From Aplysia californica (taxonomy: Eukaryota): 64,000 bases of DNA. Numbering within the stretch: position 1 is the first letter of the stretch; the number at the start of each line of letters is the position of its first letter. The DNA lies in contig NW_004797760.1 of assembly GCF_000002075.1 (NCBI RefSeq), forward strand, positions 401,993 to 465,992. Reading direction: 5' to 3'. The notes below the pieces were generated by a model that ran no database searches, was not told the origin of the DNA, and was given only the letters and a program-made list of their open reading frames with translations. Position numbers and translations under genes: made by a program. Shown one piece after another: positions 46,622 through 61,300 of the stretch.

Positions 46622-46940
46622 TTTTAGTTTTAGTAAGTGTTTTACGGCACTTGCAACTCAATAAGGTCATATATAAGTGCTGAAGATTAGAGGTGTTACA
46701 AGAGAGTAACAAACACAAAAAAGAAGGAAGGGAGATCAAGACGATAGATGTTTGATAGGAAAGAAGTTAGTTTCAGTAAGTATTTTACGGTACTTGCAAC
46801 ACAATAAGGTCATATAAGTGCCGAAGATTAGAGGTGTTATAAGAAAGTAACAAACACAAAAAAGGAGGGGAGATAAAGATGATAGATCATGTTTGAAAGG
46901 AAAGAAGTAAACCACACCAGAGCATCCGCCGACCACCCAC
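46622..46940 (-). mobile_element. Family A tandem dimer (full copy plus 5'-truncated copy)
   Basis: Two adjacent copies inside one CCACAGGG direct repeat. Confidence 0.8.
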
Positions 46941-47847
46941 TCCACAGGGGAATAAAACTCAGGTTTTCTGCTTGCGGCAGAGAAATGCCTTACAGGGGCA
47001 CCACAGACAGGGGCACCACAGATACGGGCATTAATACATTTTTTTATCTTGGAACTTTTGGCATCATTCACACCGTATTTATTACCAAGCGAGTCGTGAT
47101 TGGGAATAACCACCGATTGTCCCCATCAGAGCTTTCTTGAACTTTAATTGTTCTTCGGGTTTTCAAAGCTCTCTCTAACTCCATCCTTTTCGTTTAGATT
47201 TAGTCCTACTATAATTGAAGGTGGGTTTTTTTATTGGAATTAGACACGGGCTGAGTAATGTAAGTGCTGCCAAATTTTTGGGTTTTTTTTGTTTTGTTTC
47301 AGTACGAGCTTTATGGAGCTCGCAACTACAACCCATGAATAAAAATTATTTCACAGTGGAGCTTATCTACTTTACTCAGTGATGTGGAAAACGTCTGGTC
47401 ATTTTATAATTATAAAGCCCCAGTACTTTTGGAGTTAACATTAACTGCTTGAATAAGAAAAGCAATGAAGACATATACCTTGGGTACACCTGCCTTTGTG
47501 CGAAACATTAGTTTCAATGCAGTTACCCTTCAAGAACCTACACCGACAAATGAGACTTATCAGGGGAAGGAATGAAAAGTAAAAGATTCATTACCAGTTC
47601 AGAACAGTCCGAGAGCTGACACTGTTCTCACTATTCTCCATCGACAAAATCATTTTGAATTCTTTCACTCTCACACGTACGAATATGAACAGGCTTGCTG
47701 TTTTAACTCCTCAAAGGCAACGTTTCGGCACCCTTAGAACCATCATACACAAATCAGAAACACGAGCTTGTATATTTCATAGTATGCACACTCTTGCATG
47801 TCTTTTAAAGTTTCAAATTTAAAGAAAAAAAATCGAAAACTTTTTTT

Positions 47848-48018
47848 TTGGTAAGAGTTTTACGACACTTGCAACACAATAAGGTCATATAAGTGCCGAA
47901 GATTAGAGGTGTTACAAGGGAGTAACAAACACAAAAAAGAAGCAGGAGAGATAAAGACGATAGACGTTTGATAGGAAAGAAGAAGCAAACCACACCAGAG
48001 CACCCGCCAACCATCCAT
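47848..48018 (-). mobile_element. Short retroposon family A copy
   Basis: Family A sequence flanked by AAAACTTTTTT. Confidence 0.8.
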
Positions 48019-52383: not shown

Positions 52384-55300
52384 TCATCTGACTATTTGTT
52401 GTCGTTTCATCTTCCTTTCCATCTTCTTCTGCTTCTTTTCATCCACTTGCTCTTCTTGTGGGGGTGAGAAAAACCAGGGCCCAAGTATATTCACCCAAAG
52501 CATGTAAAAAGCTCTTCCAGGAACCTGAAAAAGACAAACACAATGGGTAGGTTATGAATGTCGATGGTTTAGTGGTTAAGCTCTCGGACTCGCAACCGTT
52601 ACGTCGTGGGTTCGAATCCCGTCAGGGGCCCGACATTGTGTCCTTGGGAAAGGCACTTTGCACAAATTTTCCTCACTTCACCCAGGTGGAAATGGGTACC
52701 CGGCTATAGACAGTGAACGATCTTGTCAGTTTGATAGTGTTTGAGCGCGTGAAATCCGCAGCTTGCACTGTACGCTTCCGTGGAAGCCGAGTATGTTTCT
52801 GAGTGTTCTCAGAGGGTCTGCTGGGGTAACAATAGTTGTAAAGTGCATAGAGCATGCTCTTGAGCATGGACATGCGCTATATAAATGCATTTTAAAAACA
52901 CTTCCGCCCCGCCACCATACAAAACTTTTTATACAGTGGAGTCCATATAAACTGAACACAGTGTTAATATGAAATCAGCGGTAATCTGAAAGGAAATTAA
53001 ATTCCCTTTTTTTGTCCTACTATTTGAGCAACCTCTCACTCTAAACCAAAAACTTGCCAAAGAAAATTTGGTGGTCCCCCAGATTTCAGTTTAAACAGAC
53101 TCCAGAAAGATATGAAGCTTTTCTCCATGTCAGGGGAAAAAAACATCAACATATGAAAACCAGAAATTCAGTGTACATTCTGTATCAACATTATTCAGCC
53201 GTTTTTGTTTTTTTTACTTTCAGAAAGGAGGAAAATGACCCGATTATCTTTAAAAAAAGTAATAATAGAAGAAATTGTTTTGCATGAAAACTGTGGGGGA
53301 AGCAGAAATAATACACTAATGTTTTATTACATTAATTAATGATGGAGGTGTTACCATAGCCTCCAAAAGCTCAATCATGATCAAATCTGGCATATTATCT
53401 ATCCTTCATTGATGGGTCAAGTATCCAAAGTCAAAAACAAAAGACAAGAACTTTTGACCGAAATGGGAATGTTCTGAGAGAGGAGCTAAGGATCCTGTTG
53501 TACCATCCCTACAGCATTTCTCTTGTTCAGAGCAGTAAAGCATCAACGTTTAAAAAAAAAAAGAGTAACTCAGTTTGTTTTTTTAGTTTTAGTAGAGGTT
53601 TTACGGCGCTCGCAACTGCATAAGGTCATATGAGCGCCAGAAGATTAGAGGTGTTACAAGAGAGTAACAAACATAAAAAAGAAGAAGGGGAGATAAGGAC
53701 GATAGATGTTTGATAGGAAAGAAGAAGCAAACCACACCAGAGCACCCGCCAACCACCCACAGAGTAACTCAAAATCCGCATTAGTCTTGGGACAGTACCG
53801 TAACAATACAAACTATACTTCCCTATAACTGGATCCACACTATAAATCCATTTAAAAAAACCCAAAACAAAACAGAATACAAAGAGCCCAGTTCCAACAA
53901 GTGTCACGACTCAACATTACTATACAGTAAATTACAGCACAGTAAACAGCAAAGCACACTACTCCTCCACTGGGACACCTTTATAGAACCAAGCAGTCCA
54001 TACAGGTGTCTTCAGTTCAACTCACTACACAAGTCAGTACAAAAATTACATTTCTTATCAAAATATAGCACAACTCACCAACAGCAATAACAACCAGAAG
54101 TAGTTGGACATCAGTGTTGCAACTTGAACCATAGATGTAAGGAGTATGAGATCTTTGATGTGTCTGTAGAGAGAAACAGATTTTTAAAAAAAAGAAGCAA
54201 AACTTAAAATCTTAATTCAAGTAACACTAACATGAGGGGAAAAAAACAAACATGACAGGTCTCTTGAGGGATCTTATTTCAAGCCTGAGCACTTTTGGCG
54301 ATAGGGAAGGCTGATGATAATGAAAAATCTAGAACAAAGATGTTAAAACTCCACAAACATGCCCAATAAGTAGATTAAAAATAAATATATCATACTTCAT
54401 TCTCCATAAGGCTCTTATTGTGAAATGTTTAAATAAAATAAAAAATAAACATCTTATATATGGTCGCCTCTAATGACAAGCGGGCTACCCCAGATTTCGG
54501 GGGTTTCCAGAAATCTTGACCGACACCAAAAGTGGGCATTACCCTACCAATAGGAGAAGTTTGGTTTCATTGTTGTGTGTATTTGTTTGGTTATAGAGAA
54601 AATTCTCCTTGTCTTTTAAAGAAACTAAACAAGGGGCAAAAAACTTTACCTGCGATTTTCTCAAAACTGCATTTTTTTAGATAGCCCCCTTGTGCTTAGA
54701 AGCAGGCCATCTGAAATTCTCTGATTGTAAATAACCAAAGCAAGGATTCATGAACAGCAAATATTAAATTAAGGCCTGATCAAAAGTAAAGCATGTGAAC
54801 TTAGAGAGGGGGGGGGGGGGATCACCACAATGTACATTGAGACTTCACTTGAAAAGAGGGAGTTAAGAACATGCCACAAACACACGGTGCTCACTCAGCC
54901 ATTCCTGCCTCCATGTTGAGATCCACCCCAGGGTCAATCAACTGTCCTTCATGGTATGTGGCTCGGGACATGCTGGCCATGAATTGGTACGTAGCCAGGT
55001 AGATGACGGAACACAGAACACACATGATCTGAAAAGAAGCAATAAATCTGAATTAAGCTACATATCTATTATTTTTCACAGGCATCATTTTACACAAAAT
55101 ATAAGCTGCAGCAATTGTTGGGCTAAAAATCACAAAAAATACATAAGAATATAAGTTTAAAGGAAAAGGAAAGAAACCAACAAGCAAGTGGGCTTTGCAC
55201 TGAGCGCAGCTGAATCAAGTTAGTCTTTTTTGAAAAGGCTAATTTACGTTGTATGGGAAAACACCAATTTATGATGTGCGTGAAATCACCAACTTTTAAC

Positions 55301-58300
55301 TGAATGCCTTGCTCATGTGGTGATAAGACCTGATCTTCATTCTCTACCCAAGACATAAAAGGTAGAGGAATATCATTCGGTAGCTACAAGACCACATGTA
55401 TGTGCCATCATTCGTATCTGTTCCTTGTGTCCATTATTATTATTTCCCTTATTTGTCAATCGTATTCATCTGCTTTATTTCTGTCCCGTTTCTGTCCCAG
55501 TCATGCATCGTCTGACGTATGTCTTCATTGTGCTTGATTATTAAAAGTCTACGTCAAGTCACAAAGAGTGTTGACATTTATCTATGAAGACATAAGAGAT
55601 ACATCATGACCACCATCCCTTGCCCTGCCCCGGGCTGCGGCGTGGAGTGGCCTGCATCTACGCCGACCGAGGTGTTGACACGCCTCATTGACATCCACGC
55701 CACCACAGCCCATGCAACACGAGCGAATGCACCGACTGCGGCAGCCAAGGCTGAGAAAGTGCGACGCCCTGTCGTGTCTGCATCCGGAACGAGCGAGGCG
55801 TGGTCATACTTCACCCAACGGTGGGCCGACTACAAACAAGCGACTCGCCTCACTGGTGCAGACATCGTCTTCCAGCTTCTCGAGTGCTGCGATGAATCGC
55901 TACGAAAGGATCTCACTAGGACATTCGGCGCCCTAGCCTCCAGCGGAGAGGACACTGTCTTAAAGAACATCAAGAGCCTGGCGGTGCGCCAGGAAAACAT
56001 CATGGTAGCACGGGTACAGCTACATCAAATGAAGCAAGACCGGGACGAGCCTGTCAGAGCCTTCGCCGCCCGCCTCAGGGGCCAGGCTGGGGTTTGCAAC
56101 TTCAAGATAAAATGCCCTAGGTGCCCTCCAGATGTCCACGAACCCAGCGTGGACTATAGCGATATGATGATTCGTGACGTCCTCATCCGAGGTCTAATTG
56201 ATGAGGAGATCCGACTCGACATCTTAGGTGAGTCAAAGCAGGACATGTCCCTCGAGGATGCACTCTGCTACGTGGAGGCGAAGGAGAGTGGCAAGAGGTC
56301 AGCCAGTCGCCTCGTTGAAAGCTGCTCCTACACCACGGCAGCGGCCACAAGCTCCTACAAGCGCAGTGAGAAGCTCGGCACACAGGGCAACTTGTTCCAA
56401 AGTAAGGGCCAAGCGTTCCCCTGCAATTACTGCGGAAAACTGGACCATGGGAATGGTAGACAGGAACGTATGAAGAAGTGTCCGGCATTTGGTAAAAGAT
56501 GCACCAGGTGTGGCCTATCCAATCATTTCGCCAACTTCTGCCGACAGTCGTCACGGAATCGCAACCCCTCCAATGCCCTGGATGACTCTGCTGCCGCCTT
56601 TGACAGTCTATGCGGTGCAGATTCCGCCACACCAGTGTCTAATGCGCACTCTGTATCCCTAGACCATCATGTATACAACGAGTTTTGCAGGGCATGGGAG
56701 AAGCGAGCATCCGACCCTCAGCCTTTTGTGAATGTCACCGTCCAGGCAGTGCCTTCAGATGCCCAATCTCTCGGCTTCCCGCCATCTCTGAGAGGCAGCA
56801 CCTCTCCCGTCAAGTACCAAGCTATGGCAGACACTGGGTGCCAGTCGTGCCTGGCGGGCGTAGCACTCTTGACTAGGATGAGCCTCACCCGCCGCCATCT
56901 CCTCCCTGTCAACATGAAGATGACAGCTGCGAATCGTGGGGCCATTGACATCATCGGAGCCCTTCCCCTTCGTATTTCTGGTACATCTCCGTCCAACACC
57001 AAGCTGGTGACTCACCAGATGGTGTACTTCACCACATCCACTGGTCGGGTGTTCCTAAGCAAGCAAGCCTGTGTGGCTTTGGGAATAATCCCTCCTAGCT
57101 TTCCGACCATTGGCGCCACCAGTGCAGCAATCAATTCGAAGGACAAGCCGGCTTGCGGGTGCTCACACCGCCAACCACCTCCGCCACCACCAACCTCCCT
57201 CCCGCTTCCTGCCACAGAAGAGAACAGAGAGGGCTTGGAGCAGTGGCTCCTAGATCACTACAGGTCCAGTACCTTCAACGTGTGCGAACATCAACCTCTA
57301 CCGATGATGTCTGGCCCTCCCATCCACCTCATGGTGGACCCTGACGCCCGTCCCGTGGCCCACCACACCCCCATTCCTGTCCCAGTCCATTGGCAAGACG
57401 AGGTCAAAGCCGGCCTAGATCAAGATGTGCGACTGGGGGTCATCGAGCCTGTCCCCGTCGGCACCCCAGTCACCTGGTGCCACAAGATGGTGATCTGTCC
57501 GAAGAAGTCGGGTAAACCAAGGCGCACGGTTGACCTCCAACCGCTTAACCGACATGCAACGCGGGAGACACATCACACTCAGTCTCCCTTCCACCAGGCC
57601 CGCAAAGTGCCACCCCACACGAGGAAATCGGTTTTTGACGCGTGGAATGGCTACCATAGCATCGCTCTTGCTGAAGAGGATAGACATTTGACGACGTTTA
57701 TCACCCCATGGGGTCGTTATCGCTATCTCGTGGCCCCCCAAGGCTACATATCATCCGGGGATGGATACAGCCGCCGCTTCGATGAGATTGTCGCCGACTT
57801 CCCCCACAAAACCAAATGCATTGACGACACCCTTATGTGGTCAAACTCTATTGAGGAAGCCTTTTTTCAGACCATCAAGTGGCTTGACCTATGTGGCACC
57901 AATGGCATCATACTCAACCCATCCAAGTTTCAATTCGCCAAAACTACGGTTGAGTTTGCAGGTTTCGAAATAACTCCCTCTACCGTGCGCCCATGTGCCC
58001 GCTACCTGGAGGCCATTCGACATTTCCCCACACCTCGGAACATCACCGACGTCAGGAGCTGGTTCGGTCTCATCAATCAGGTATCCTATGCCTTCGCTTC
58101 CGCCGAACGCATGCTCCCATTCCGGGAAGCCCTGAAGCCGGGGAAACGCCTCGAATGGACAGAGGAGCTCGACCGTCTGTTTGAATGGTCAAAGGAGGCC
58201 ATCATCAACGAAATCCACCAAGGGGTTGAAATATTTGACAAGAAGAAACCAACTTGCCTAGCCACCGACTGGAGCAAGGATGGCATAGGCTTCTGGCTCT

Positions 58301-61300
58301 TCCAGAAACATTGTACATGTCTTTCGGAAAAGCCATTTTGCTGCAAAACTGGCTGGAAGATCACCCTGGTCGGTGGTCGATTCACATCAGGAGCCGAGTC
58401 CCGCTATGCGCCCATAGAAGGTGAAGCCCTGGCTGTGGTTGATGCACTAGACAAAGCACGCCATTTCACCTTGGGTTGTTCCGACCTGATCGTGGCGGTG
58501 GACCACAAACCTCTTTTGAAGACGTTTGGGGACCGGTGTCTCGACGATATCCCCAATCCCCGCCTCAGGAACCTCAAGGAGAAGTCCCTTAGATATCGTT
58601 TCCGCATCGTCCACATCCCCGGTCTACGCCATGCTGCAGCAGATGCCGTCTCCCGCAGACCAGTAGGCAGCCCTAACACTCTCAGACTCCCTGATGATGC
58701 CGCTCCCATTCTGCTCCTTGATGACCCTCCCTTGACACTTGAACTGCCACACGACTTTCTTTCTGCCATCCGCACCCAGGAACTGGATGACACCAACCAG
58801 GTATGCTCCAAACCTGACCTCGCTCCAACTGAGGTGATCAAGTCAGTGACTTGGGACGAGATTCGACTTGCAACATCCAGCGACTCTACAATGACTGCTT
58901 TGAGTAACACTATTGAGGATGGGTTCCCTGAAGACAGGGCTTCTCTGTCCCCTGATCTTCGCCCATACCATCAATTCCGGGAGTTCCTCACGACATTTGA
59001 TGGTGTCATCCTGTACCACGACCGGGTAGTCATCCCCCCGTCGCTCCGTGAGCGAGTCCTCCAGTCCTTACACTCTGCTCACCAGGGCTACCTAGTTGCA
59101 GTCGACAGGTACAGTAACTGGCCTATCGTTGAAGAAGCCTCCCATGGGTCTGCCGGCCTCGTTGCCGCGTTGCGTCGCATCTTCGTCACGTATGGCATCA
59201 GTGATGAACTGACATCGGACGGAGGCCCAGAGTTCACGTCCCTGGCAACCTCAACCTTCCTTCGCAACTGGGGTGTCCACCACAGGGTCTCTTCAGTCGC
59301 CTTTCCCCACTCTAATTGTCGCGCTGAAGTTGGAGTAAAGACAGTGAAACGGTTGATCACTGACAACACGGGTGCACAAGGATCTTTAAACACTGACAAG
59401 TTCCAGCGCGCAATGCTGCAATACAGGAACACTCCTGATCGTGACACCCACCTATCCCCAGCGATGTGTATCTTTGGACATCCAATACGGGACTTCATCC
59501 CCATCCACCCAGGGAAGTATCAGCCTCACAGTACCTGGCGTGAAACCCTTCTGTCGCGAGAGGATGCACTGAGGAACCGGCACATGCGCACCGCTGAGCG
59601 CCTCTCTGAGCACACTCGCATCTTACCTCCACTCGTCGTCGGTGACTGTGTGCGCATACAGAACCAAACGGGAACCCACCCGACCAAATGGGACAAGACG
59701 GGCATTGTAGTCGAAGTACGTCAATTTGACCAGTACGTCGTTCGAGTGGATGGCTCTGGCCGCGTCACTCTTCGGAACAGAAAGTTCCTCCGCAACTACA
59801 TGCCAGTGGTCCCACGCTCACCACTGACAATGATCCCGGGTGGCACCTCACCACCACAGCCGGTGCCTCAGAATGTTCACACCCCCGGGCATGCCAAGCC
59901 CAGCGTGACCTCGCTGCCCTCTCCTTGCCCGGATCTACCACAACCAGCTGACGTTCCGGACCCCCCAGCACATGATCCATCGATGCCCAGTGTCCCCGAA
60001 TCCAGGCAAGAACTAGCACCTGATCCACGCCCTGCTGTCGAGACGGTGGTTCCACAACCTCAGGCTCAAGCCACCCCGCGTGCTCTACGTTCGCTCCAGC
60101 CGCACAACGCCCCTGGCATACAAGAGCAAGATGCTCCCATAGGCGTGAGCACGCCTCCAGGCGGCCCTCGGCGATCGGCGAGACTGTTGGCCAGACAGAG
60201 CCCCAAGTCAATTGACTCTAAATCTTATTCTGATTCAGATCATTGATCAATCATTTATTCCTTGTTGTATCACCATTATTTCTTGACATTTCATCAGTCT
60301 TTTCTGTTCTACTCCAAAGACTTGGGGGGCGTAGAGGAATATCATTCGGTAGCTACAAGACCACATGTATGTGCCATCATTCGTATCTGTTCCTTGTGTC
60401 CATTATTATTATTTCCCTTATTTGTCAATCGTATTCATCTGCTTTATTTCTGTCCCGTTTCTGTCCCAGTCATGCATCGTCTGACGTATGTCTTCATTGT
60501 GCTTGATTATTAAAAGTCTACGTCAAGTCACAAAGAGTGTTGACATTTATCTAAAAGGATTAATATTCCAATAAATAAATCATCTAAAGGTGAGAGGATT
60601 CCAACAAACGTAACGATCAAATAAAAACTGTCCTCCATCGAGGTGAGGTTTCCTTCATCCACTATTGTTTATGTATGCATTTGCTAGTTAAAAATATTAA
60701 AATAGTAACTTACCGCTGAAGTTGTTGTAAAATAGTCCCAAAACAGGAAATAGTACACAGTGTAGTAAAGGACCTAAAAGACAAAAAAAAAGACAGCTTG
60801 AATTGAATACATAATCAAGAAAAAATGGACACAATAACAAACGACCATCAACAGTAATCAATCAGTGAGTCATCTCTGAGTAACAACTAAAATCTACAGC
60901 AAACCAAGTGAAGTATTTTTGTGACCATTACCAATGCCTGTTTTATGTACATGATATGATATATGAAGTCACAGACTAACAAAGTAATTTTATTTTCAAC
61001 TTCAATGGCTAAACTTTCAGACCGAAACTTCTAAACTAAACTTGCACAAAATCTCTCTCCCCTCTCGTCTTAAGGAGCTCAAAACTTTTTTTTTCTCACT
61101 CTAGCCCTTACTCTCCATAACTACCACCATTATCCATAAACAACCCCAAAACTTTTTCAGACCGGACCAAACCCCATCTCCTGGAGGCCACTGTTTTGGA
61201 TAGAAACTGAGCCATTTCGAGCTAAACTATGAGTCAAAAAGAAAAGCCATACAAAGCTGTCCTAATTTGAGAACAAATAACCGAAACGAAATCAACCAAA

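Follow-up and report, generated by a model that had tools for sequence, protein, structure and literature searches.

Covarying LTR and primer-site segments point to self-priming in a lineage of marine-invertebrate Gypsy retrotransposons

How does an LTR retrotransposon begin reverse transcription when the bases behind its 5' LTR do not have the form of a tRNA-type primer-binding site? The question is raised by an element in the 64,000-nt stretch of Aplysia californica DNA that was analyzed here (hereafter, the window), for which the original prediction proposed that a segment of the element's own LTR acts as the primer. To our knowledge, fission-yeast elements are the only ones in which self-primed reverse transcription has been demonstrated. 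Two reports (PMC5341516 and PMC4600332, citing Levin 1995-1998) establish its existence in Tf1, Tf2 and Tj1, and beyond fission yeast it has been inferred for chromoviral relatives and one plant Copia lineage (PMC6317226).

The element, a recently inserted LTR retrotransposon, extends from 55363 to 60553. Its 222-bp LTRs are identical, the 5 bp AAAGG are duplicated at the target site, and a single gag-pol ORF runs for 1546 codons. Its parts, all on the forward strand, are as follows.

55358..55362 (+): 5' target-site duplication AAAGG, identical to 60554-60558
55363..55584 (+): 5' LTR, 222 bp, termini TAGAG...TCTA, 100% identical to the 3' LTR
55498..55501 (+): initiator-like CAGT with A at 55499, a possible alternative transcription start
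55518..55528 (+): arm 1, candidate self-primer segment inside the LTR, ending in CAT, exact complement of 55584-55594
55540..55545 (+): poly(A) signal ATTAAA, located in the loop that separates the arms
55584..55594 (+): arm 2, candidate primer-binding site, made of the last LTR base and the first 10 internal bases
55606..60246 (+): gag-pol, single ORF of 1546 codons without stops or frameshifts
56500..56541 (+): Gag CCHC zinc knuckle, a pattern match at residues 299-312
57502..57972 (+): reverse transcriptase (RT), matched by Pfam RVT_1, motifs DAWNGYH and C-I-D-D; best solved relative, Ty3 RT
58156..58533 (+): RNase H, Pfam RT_RNaseH / RT_RNaseH_2
59092..59298 (+): integrase catalytic core, matching part of the Pfam rve profile
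60316..60329 (+): AAAGACTTGGGGGG, resembling a polypurine tract and separated from the 3' LTR by two bases
60332..60553 (+): 3' LTR
60554..60558 (+): 3' target-site duplication AAAGG

The direct repeat itself measures 223 nt at 100% identity, and the LTRs were trimmed to 222 nt by target-duplication analysis. By inspection, a 5-bp duplication together with TA..TA LTR termini was also seen in about 15 related loci, and the G-run ahead of the LTR is likewise present in relatives of the window element. The order of coding domains (RVT_1, RT_RNaseH and rve, with a D-T-G motif upstream) fits the Ty3/Gypsy pol order of protease, RT, RNase H and integrase, and the best matches among solved structures were Ty3 Gag-Pol (E 1e-34) and Ty3 RT (E 5e-32), with caulimovirus and foamy-virus enzymes behind them; the element is of the Ty3/Gypsy type. 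The RT motifs highlighted in the original prediction, DAWNGY and CIDD, are located at residues 678 and 738 of the window ORF and are conserved in relatives. When compared to five relatives, the ORF has an in-frame deletion of 67 codons that hits the integrase; Integrase_H2C2, found in 27 of 27 relatives, is missing from the window copy. Since part of the integrase is gone, this copy was probably mobilized by the proteins of intact copies. No Rfam family matched within the window.

The segments TATGTCTTCAT (55518-55528) and ATGAAGACATA (55584-55594) are exact 11-nt reverse complements, the latter taking the final base of the 5' LTR as its first, and ATTAAA does lie just downstream of the first arm, both as the original prediction had described. 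Its reading of the junction also held: the bases directly 3' of the 5' LTR are TGAAGACATA, not TGG, and no TGG occurs in the window element between the 5' LTR and the ORF, a gap of only 21 nt. Over both strands of the entire window, chance would produce this 11-mer 0.06 times. In the predicted fold of 55518-55612, the 11-bp stem is the closing helix (-21.4 kcal/mol, z = -2.0); for this single window sequence the z-score is modest. One additional match to the 11-mer was noted at 47465-47475, in sequence that is otherwise without similarity to the element and unrelated to it. A PBS-like 9-mer in the 5' flank (55350-55358) was also considered and is treated as a chance occurrence, since 203 of 500 shuffles scored as well as the local alignment of flank and LTR.

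The original prediction had suggested looking for co-variation of the binding site and the LTR segment in related families. An exact complement of 11-18 nt, between a segment inside the LTR and the bases from the last LTR base on, was present in 58 of the 87 related loci that we collected, with 47 distinct arm pairs among them and loops of 36-87 nt. No recorded protein is identical to the window polyprotein; its nearest relatives are gastropod sequences (Batillaria, Elysia, Aplysia and Plakobranchus). When only loci with both LTRs are counted, 22 of 27 have the 11-18 nt complement by our first criterion, and the five exceptions (one-mismatch, N-containing or mis-bounded cases) contain the repeat too. 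As controls we took 1620 windows of 30 nt inside 27 related elements and searched each against the element's own LTRs; most of them gave a longest complement of 5-7 nt, and 3 of the 1620 gave one of at least 10 nt.

Pairs were counted with the two arms taken separately and anchored at the junction. A MAFFT alignment of 25 R-U5-PBS regions, in which the 3' arm and the end of U5 aligned and the 5' arms were shifted, was not used for these counts. All four Watson-Crick pair types were seen at helix positions 3-11 of the 47 arm pairs. Shuffling of partners left 73% pairing at position 3 and 25-47% at positions 4-11, and beyond position 15 the observed pairing was at background level. Compensatory changes separate close relatives (L004 and L018, L010 and L011, L064 and L068). 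The end of the helix coincides with the LTR/internal boundary in every family, the point from which minus-strand synthesis has to begin. TGG directly follows the LTR in 0 of 47 families, and no TGG 10-mer common to the families was found within +1..+150.

Tf1-type self-priming is, at a probability of roughly 0.85, the best explanation for the window element and its relatives, because complementary arms recur in 58 of 87 loci as 47 pairs with compensatory differences and control windows almost never attain 10 nt. The interpretation originally offered for one element thus gains support from the covariation and from the helix end at the LTR boundary. We infer from comparative sequence data that the LTR segment is present in the RNA, where it is cleaved and extended. 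The segment 55518-55528, which would lie toward the transcript's 5' end, would fold back on the primer-binding site 55584-55594 at the U5 edge. The element's own RNase H presumably would cut at the 3' end of the duplex, after a conserved CA or CAT, and the released 3'-OH would be extended through U5 and R. Note that the helix takes in the last LTR base and that cleavage after CA or after CAT would be compatible with it. The plus strand would later copy the primer, so that the binding site would be rewritten from the primer in each cycle. Such recopying would explain why the arms are perfectly complementary and still drift between families, and arms that drift together in this manner would give rise to dozens of family-specific primer and site pairs.

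Where the transcript might begin bears on the form of the primer. In about 8-11 families, belonging to more than one subclade, an initiator-like CAGT has its A on the first paired base or at most 2 bases away from it. No such motif occurs at the arm edge in the window element and its nearest relatives. The only CAGT in the window element has its A at 55499, 19 nt upstream of the duplex. From this motif to the 3' end of the primer segment is 30 nt, and L087 and L026 likewise show a spacing of 29-30 nt. Because the nearest initiator-like motif is 19 nt upstream, the primer of the window element may differ from that of Tf1 in having a 5' tail that stays unpaired. A canonical poly(A) signal lies within the loop in only 24 of 47 families, which makes the limits of R and U5 uncertain. 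TATA boxes upstream of the primer segment are essentially lacking (3 matches in 41 families, with no preferred position). The related-element contigs that we retrieved had no poly(A) tail; the Logan contigs are k-mer-circularized collapses of LTRs and not transcripts.

Could the pairing have another origin? A lone 11-mer match in one element of AT-rich DNA is only moderately improbable, and the window does hold the unrelated copy at 47465-47475. Chance is nevertheless refuted by the recurrence of the match at the same position, with different sequences, in 58 loci, by the covariation and by the control windows, and its probability is negligible. Priming by a host molecule, with an LTR match that is incidental to the binding of a tRNA, a tRNA half (e.g., Sec or mitochondrial Trp) or some other small RNA of the host, has precedent in the internal or half-tRNA priming known in other elements, Copia lineages among them (PMC6317226). 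A search for tRNA genes was negative in the window and yielded a single doubtful call among 37 loci. The sequence after the LTR differs across the 47 families yet always fits its own LTR, with no TGG starts and no common TGG 10-mer, and we consider a host primer very unlikely. tRNAs are conserved, and under tRNA priming a common site would therefore be expected, such as the TGGCGC with which the sites of all tRNA-type relatives begin. It is also improbable that the helix has a purely structural role in the RNA (e.g., in hiding the 5' poly(A) signal, in packaging or in dimerization) while priming takes another route. In the window element, as in 24 of 47 families, the helix does enclose the signal, and because the RNA lacks the second arm at its 3' end, only the copy of the signal at that end would be exposed; hiding the 5' signal may be an attractive additional role. 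A purely structural function fits poorly with a helix that in every family stops on the nucleotide of the LTR/internal boundary, a position fixed by a primer's 3' end, with the absence of any other primer site between LTR and ORF (21 nt in the window), and with the roughly one-half of families that have no canonical signal in the loop.

Self-priming could be real and still not independent, the lineage being an offshoot of Tf1/sushi chromoviruses that lost its chromodomain. Tf1 likewise has one ORF and an 11-nt primer, and no named Tf1/sushi protein is included among the references of our neighbor-joining (NJ) tree, which were nine Gypsy proteins, the chromodomain proteins being too short and left out. 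Homology searches returned none of the named Tf1, Tf2 or sushi proteins, and the lineage was compared with the sampled Gypsy proteins instead. Such descent is unlikely on several grounds. The absence of a chromodomain, already part of the original prediction, extends to the lineage (PF00385 in 0 of 28 members at E<=0.1), and the domain was recorded in two distant Gypsy matches, P0324 and P0325. Lineage pol sequences are at least 44% identical to each other and 23-27% identical to the other Gypsy proteins sampled, including chromodomain-bearing P0324, which matched in part and at 24%; the match to P0325 was short, at 137 residues. The lineage was set apart from the nine other Gypsy references in 200 of 200 NJ bootstraps, gap-rich alignment columns having been dropped before the distance trees were built. 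A C-[IV]-D-D RT box is a trait of the lineage, as are the TA..TA LTR termini of the window's subclade. Finally, some members inside the lineage have tRNA-type sites.

These members (L044, L047, L053 and L078/L080) have TG..CA LTRs followed by TGGCGC, versus the TA..TA termini and TGAAGACATA of the window element, and their LTRs contain no complement of at least 11 nt. A tRNA presumably serves as primer at their TGGCGC sites. Across the polyprotein their identity is 39-50%, and they agree with their self-complementary relatives in size and in the order of domains; they branch near the base of the lineage in an outgroup-rooted tree. Because relatives that appear to be tRNA-primed branch there, an origin of self-priming separate from that of Tf1/sushi is plausible. 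We lean, by a small measure, toward the fuller proposal that self-priming arose independently of Tf1/sushi in a large uncharacterized marine-invertebrate Gypsy lineage whose basal members kept the use of tRNA. We found no earlier description of the lineage in the literature searched, and its RT motif strings were absent from the papers searched and from the supplements of the mollusc Gypsy (MolGy) paper; the relatives retrieved carried no names that would identify a clade. The mechanism is known; the lineage appears to be new.

The comparison with established systems reveals both shared and distinct features. Tf1, Tf2, Tj1 and the Tf1/sushi group resemble the lineage in having no tRNA site and a binding site at the edge of the 5' LTR that is complementary to an LTR segment (R in Tf1). 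Tf1 and the window element share a duplex of about 11 nt and a single gag-pol ORF, and several families may also be Tf1-like in that the paired segment begins at a likely transcription start; in the window, the likely start may instead be 19 nt upstream of the duplex. The putatively self-priming lineage differs from Tf1/sushi in its lack of a chromodomain, its marine-invertebrate hosts, its C-[IV]-D-D RT box, a duplex of 11-18 nt that includes the last LTR base, and the TA..TA termini of the window's subclade. For the Tcn1 chromoviruses of plants and fungi and the plant Ty1/Copia TAR lineage (Houba, Osr-1), self-priming was likewise predicted from LTR-PBS complementarity alone, which would place the mechanism in more than one lineage; these belong to another superfamily or branch and to other hosts, and none is an animal non-chromoviral Gypsy element (PMC6317226).

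If self-priming and a separate ancestry hold for the lineage described here, it would be a second lineage with this solution, abundant and found in animals, and tRNA-independent priming would be a trait that evolves repeatedly. More than 40 natural covarying primer and site pairs would define rules of duplex length, with a minimum of 11 bp and rarely more than 15. In annotation pipelines that demand a match to tRNA, such elements will be mis-scored or their primer site overlooked. Elements of this kind would also evade host silencing by 3' tRNA fragments aimed at tRNA primer sites (PMC7472051). In Tf2, inclusion of the primer in the RNA depends on which transcription start is used; if start choice governs primer inclusion here as well, an initiator at the arm edge would be a natural switch of activity (PMC5341516).

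Among Gypsy elements of similar hosts, the Mag lineage, Steamer-like elements and the 16 MolGy mollusc clades share with the lineage a size of about 5 kb, LTRs of 136-340 bp and a single gag-pol ORF (PMC6238403, PMC11046912). The MolGy paper mentions primer sites 0 times. Unlike our lineage, the Steamer-like MchSLE1 has a reported tRNA-Asn site (PMC11046912), and Mag C has reported LTR termini of the TG..CA type (PMC3601003), versus TA..TA in the window's subclade. Troyka is another LTR element of aquatic animals with non-canonical LTR termini; it has CG..CG termini and 3-bp duplications, whereas the window element has TA..TA termini and a duplication of 5 bp (PMC12440569).

The window element is bounded by a direct repeat of 223 nt (55362-55584 versus 60331-60553) with 100% identity, and comparison of its flanks with those of relatives sets the LTR proper at 222 nt, starting with TAGAG and ending with TCTA. 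A 5-bp target duplication, AAAGG, lies on both sides. The sequence directly 3' of the 5' LTR is TGAAGACATA, not TGG, as the original prediction had stated, and the 21 nt from the LTR to the ATG at 55606 contain no TGG. Its central claim, an exact 11-nt complement between the LTR end and an LTR segment just upstream of the ATTAAA signal, was borne out by a direct sequence check. The features of the element are as follows:

55363-55584, forward strand: 5' LTR, 222 nt, identical to the 3' LTR
55518-55528, forward strand: arm 1, candidate self-primer TATGTCTTCAT, exact reverse complement of 55584-55594
55540-55545, forward strand: ATTAAA, 11 nt downstream of arm 1
55584-55594, forward strand: arm 2, putative primer-binding site ATGAAGACATA, its first base being the last LTR base
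55606-60246, forward strand: gag-pol ORF, single, 1546 codons, no stop or frameshift
2 bases before the 3' LTR: polypurine-like tract, G-rich
60332-60553, forward strand: 3' LTR, 222 nt, identical to the 5' LTR

Chance predicts 0.06 occurrences of the 11-mer in the window. A fourth exact copy occurs at 47465-47475 on the minus strand, in surroundings without other similarity to the element. In the 5' flank, 4 nt upstream of the LTR, 55350-55358 reads AAGACATAA, a 9-mer that recurs in the primer-binding region at 55587-55595. We attribute this match to chance, although its position is curious, since the local alignment of flank and LTR scores no better than 203 of 500 shuffles.

Relatives of the window polyprotein number in the thousands, and none on record is identical to it. 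The nearest named relatives (79-85% identity) are gastropod proteins from Batillaria, Elysia and Aplysia; Plakobranchus is represented by a fragment. Our comparison set of loci (labelled L with a number) comprised 7 from a protein look-up and 80 from one metagenome scan, their identity to the window protein ranging from 32 to 85%. The first three relatives each have 11-14 nt, counted from the last LTR base, that exactly complement the LTR interior, with a different sequence each time. Among the 27 loci with both LTRs, 22 have an exact complement of 11-18 nt at the LTR end; in 1620 control windows of 30 nt, drawn inside the same 27 elements and scored against their LTRs, the best complement mostly measured 5-7 nt, and only three windows attained at least 10 nt. 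The five exceptions (a single mismatch in one copy, an N within the site of another, misplaced LTR ends in three) all carry the repeat once it is searched for independently of LTR calls. When exact inverted repeats were sought without restriction (arms of at least 11 nt, spacing 15-170), 58 of the 87 loci showed the same structure, most of the others being incomplete in that region.

These loci provide 47 distinct arm pairs, separated by loops of 36-87 nt. Arm 1 ends in CAT, rarely in another trinucleotide ending in AT, and arm 2 starts with ATG or AT at the last LTR base. Counted from the junction, helix positions 1 and 2 are fixed, whereas positions 3-11 display all four Watson-Crick pair types. 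Pairing at positions 1-11 is 100% by ascertainment, so that the informative evidence is the variety of pair types, the fixed place at the LTR boundary and the control windows. When partners are swapped between families, pairing falls to 73% at position 3 and to 25-47% at positions 4-11; observed pairing at positions 12, 13, 14 and 15 is 70, 72, 63 and 54%, reaching background from position 16. Compensatory double changes separate even close relatives (L004 versus L018, L010 versus L011, L064 versus L068). The covariation for which the original prediction proposed a test in related families is present.

A second inverted repeat, exact over 13 nt and enclosing a loop of 24 nt, is found some 2.2-2.3 kb inside the polyprotein ORF of several loci (L034 2478-2527; L035, L050, L060 and L077 5187-5236; L055 5881-5930; L075 5130-5179) and is absent from the window copy. 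It is common to two families, with compensatory differences between them, and may represent an RNA hairpin.

Recurrence, covariation and controls together lend strong comparative support to the self-priming interpretation originally proposed, and on this sequence evidence we assign a probability of about 0.85 to the post-LTR site being a self-primer site. By analogy with Tf1 and Tf2, whose mechanism is summarised in PMC5341516 and PMC4600332, the LTR segment of the transcript would pair with the site at the LTR end, the RNase H of the element would cut at the end of the duplex, and the 3' end of the primer would be extended through U5 and R. We infer that in each cycle the plus strand would recopy the site from the primer. 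Such recopying is proposed as the reason why the arms stay perfectly matched while drifting, and it fits the exact arms in 47 otherwise dissimilar pairs.

A conserved host tRNA binding the site cannot explain these patterns, since the sites change from family to family and each nevertheless matches the LTR of its own element. TGG directly follows the LTR in none of the 47 families, and no TGG-initiated 10-mer within 150 nt is common to three or more of them. In the predicted fold of 55518-55612 the 11-bp stem is the closing helix. The helix ends at the very nucleotide that defines the LTR boundary, where the 3' end of a primer must sit, and this coincidence favours priming over a merely structural hairpin. 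The poly(A) signal lies inside the helix loop in the window and in 24 of 47 families, so masking of the 5' copy of this signal is a possible extra role of the helix and not a replacement for priming. A short U5 block, some 20-25 nt before the LTR 3' end (window ~55560-55570), contains several columns with at least 70% conservation among 25 otherwise very dissimilar families; it may act as a downstream element for poly(A) addition or be recognised by integrase or RT. In L001, a close relative of the window element, about 22 A residues (2475-2496) immediately follow the primer-binding site before the ORF, either through misassembly or as a genuine insertion.

TATA boxes are essentially absent upstream of the primer segment (3 hits in 41 families, at no preferred position). 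TCAGT-type initiators of metazoan promoters start transcription at the A. Of 46 families, 23 have A as their first paired base; 8 families show exactly C|AGT at the edge, and 19 have an initiator-like motif no more than 4 nt from it. Distances from the A of CAGT to the primer 3' end peak at 15, equal to the 15-nt arms, and in L054, from a second subclade, both distance and arm measure 13. This equality supports the view that in such families the primer would be the very 5' end of the RNA. In the window copy the only CAGT (55498-55501) sits 30 nt before the primer 3' end, a spacing shared with L087 and L026 (29-30 nt), so that either 55518 or 55499 is a candidate start of R. A transcription start upstream of 55518 would still include the primer segment in the RNA.

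LTRs of the window subclade start with TA(G) and end with TA, not the usual TG..CA, and are flanked by 5-bp duplications. The TA..TA termini occur in the window (55363-55367/55580-55584) and in L002-L004, L019, L031, L035, L036, L048, L050, L051, L055, L057, L060 and L073, while the second self-complementary subclade (L054, L064-L068) retains TG at the LTR 5' end. Adjoining the element of L073, an ARAGORN tRNA call with anticodon CTA ('Pyl'; 1026-1101, minus strand) is likely a pseudo-tRNA or SINE-type sequence. The lineage is distinct from Troyka, whose termini are CG..CG and whose duplications measure 3 bp (PMC12440569).

Searches of 28 lineage members detected no chromodomain, in agreement with the original prediction; precomputed annotation places one in two distant Gypsy matches. 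Identity of pol to the window is 44-100% inside the lineage. Against 11 other Gypsy proteins returned by our searches (one chromodomain-bearing; the named Tf1, Tf2 and sushi-ichi not among them), the figure is 23-27% in ten cases, and the eleventh gave 32% over a short match of 137 residues. Distance trees, built after removal of gap-rich columns, separated the lineage from nine of these proteins in 200 of 200 neighbor-joining bootstraps. With respect to the proteins sampled, a position outside the chromoviruses is supported. Some lineage members (L044, L047, L053, L078/L080) have LTRs with TG..CA ends, after which TGGCGC... forms a canonical tRNA-type site. These stand apart from the self-complementary elements in the midpoint-rooted tree and near the base of the outgroup-rooted tree, where internal order is weak (20-42 of 200 bootstraps). 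The simplest reading is that tRNA priming was ancestral and self-priming derived, which would make the latter independent of Tf1/sushi; on the proteins sampled here, an independent origin is likely.

In the full-text literature searched, which leaves most subscription journals outside its coverage, self-priming has been shown or proposed only for Tf1/Tf2/Tj1, for Tf1/sushi elements of fungi and vertebrates, for Tcn1 and for the TAR lineage of plant Copia elements, and we found no report of it there in an invertebrate non-chromoviral Gypsy group. Steamer-like mollusc elements are reported with a tRNA site (PMC11046912), and the paper defining 16 mollusc-specific Gypsy clades did not examine primer sites. 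The mechanism is already known, and the novelty lies in its occurrence throughout a large lineage of animal elements that is distinctive in its RT and LTR ends.

The uninterrupted window ORF, also foreseen, encodes a CCHC knuckle, a D-T-G protease motif, RVT_1, RNase H and an integrase core, and its nearest solved structures are Ty3 Gag-Pol and Ty3 RT. The RT motifs DAWNGY and CIDD named in the original prediction are present and conserved across 28 lineage sequences: D, G and Y of D-A-W-N-G-Y-H are invariant in all 28, and in 21 the X-X-D-D box begins with C. The window integrase lacks one in-frame stretch of 67 codons relative to five relatives, and the Pfam integrase zinc-binding domain, found in 27 of 27 relatives scanned, was not detected in it. 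The window copy is young, as its LTRs are identical and its target duplication intact; together with the integrase deletion, the identical LTRs indicate a recently inserted, probably non-autonomous copy, probably moved by proteins of intact copies. Two lineage polyproteins in the protein alignment bear a SAM domain (best E 1e-5), which is unusual among Gypsy elements.

Elsewhere, the window contains an ORF that is probably an exon or gene of a host carbohydrate sulfotransferase:

5929-6918, minus strand: ORF of 330 codons, Sulfotransfer_2 domain, E 1e-29

Six N runs lie between 8683 and 22208, and there are several mini- and microsatellites. A dispersed, partly tandem repeat family of about 100-141 nt occupies 46624-46942, 47846-48017 and 53640-53759, its copies sharing 65-94% identity with one another.
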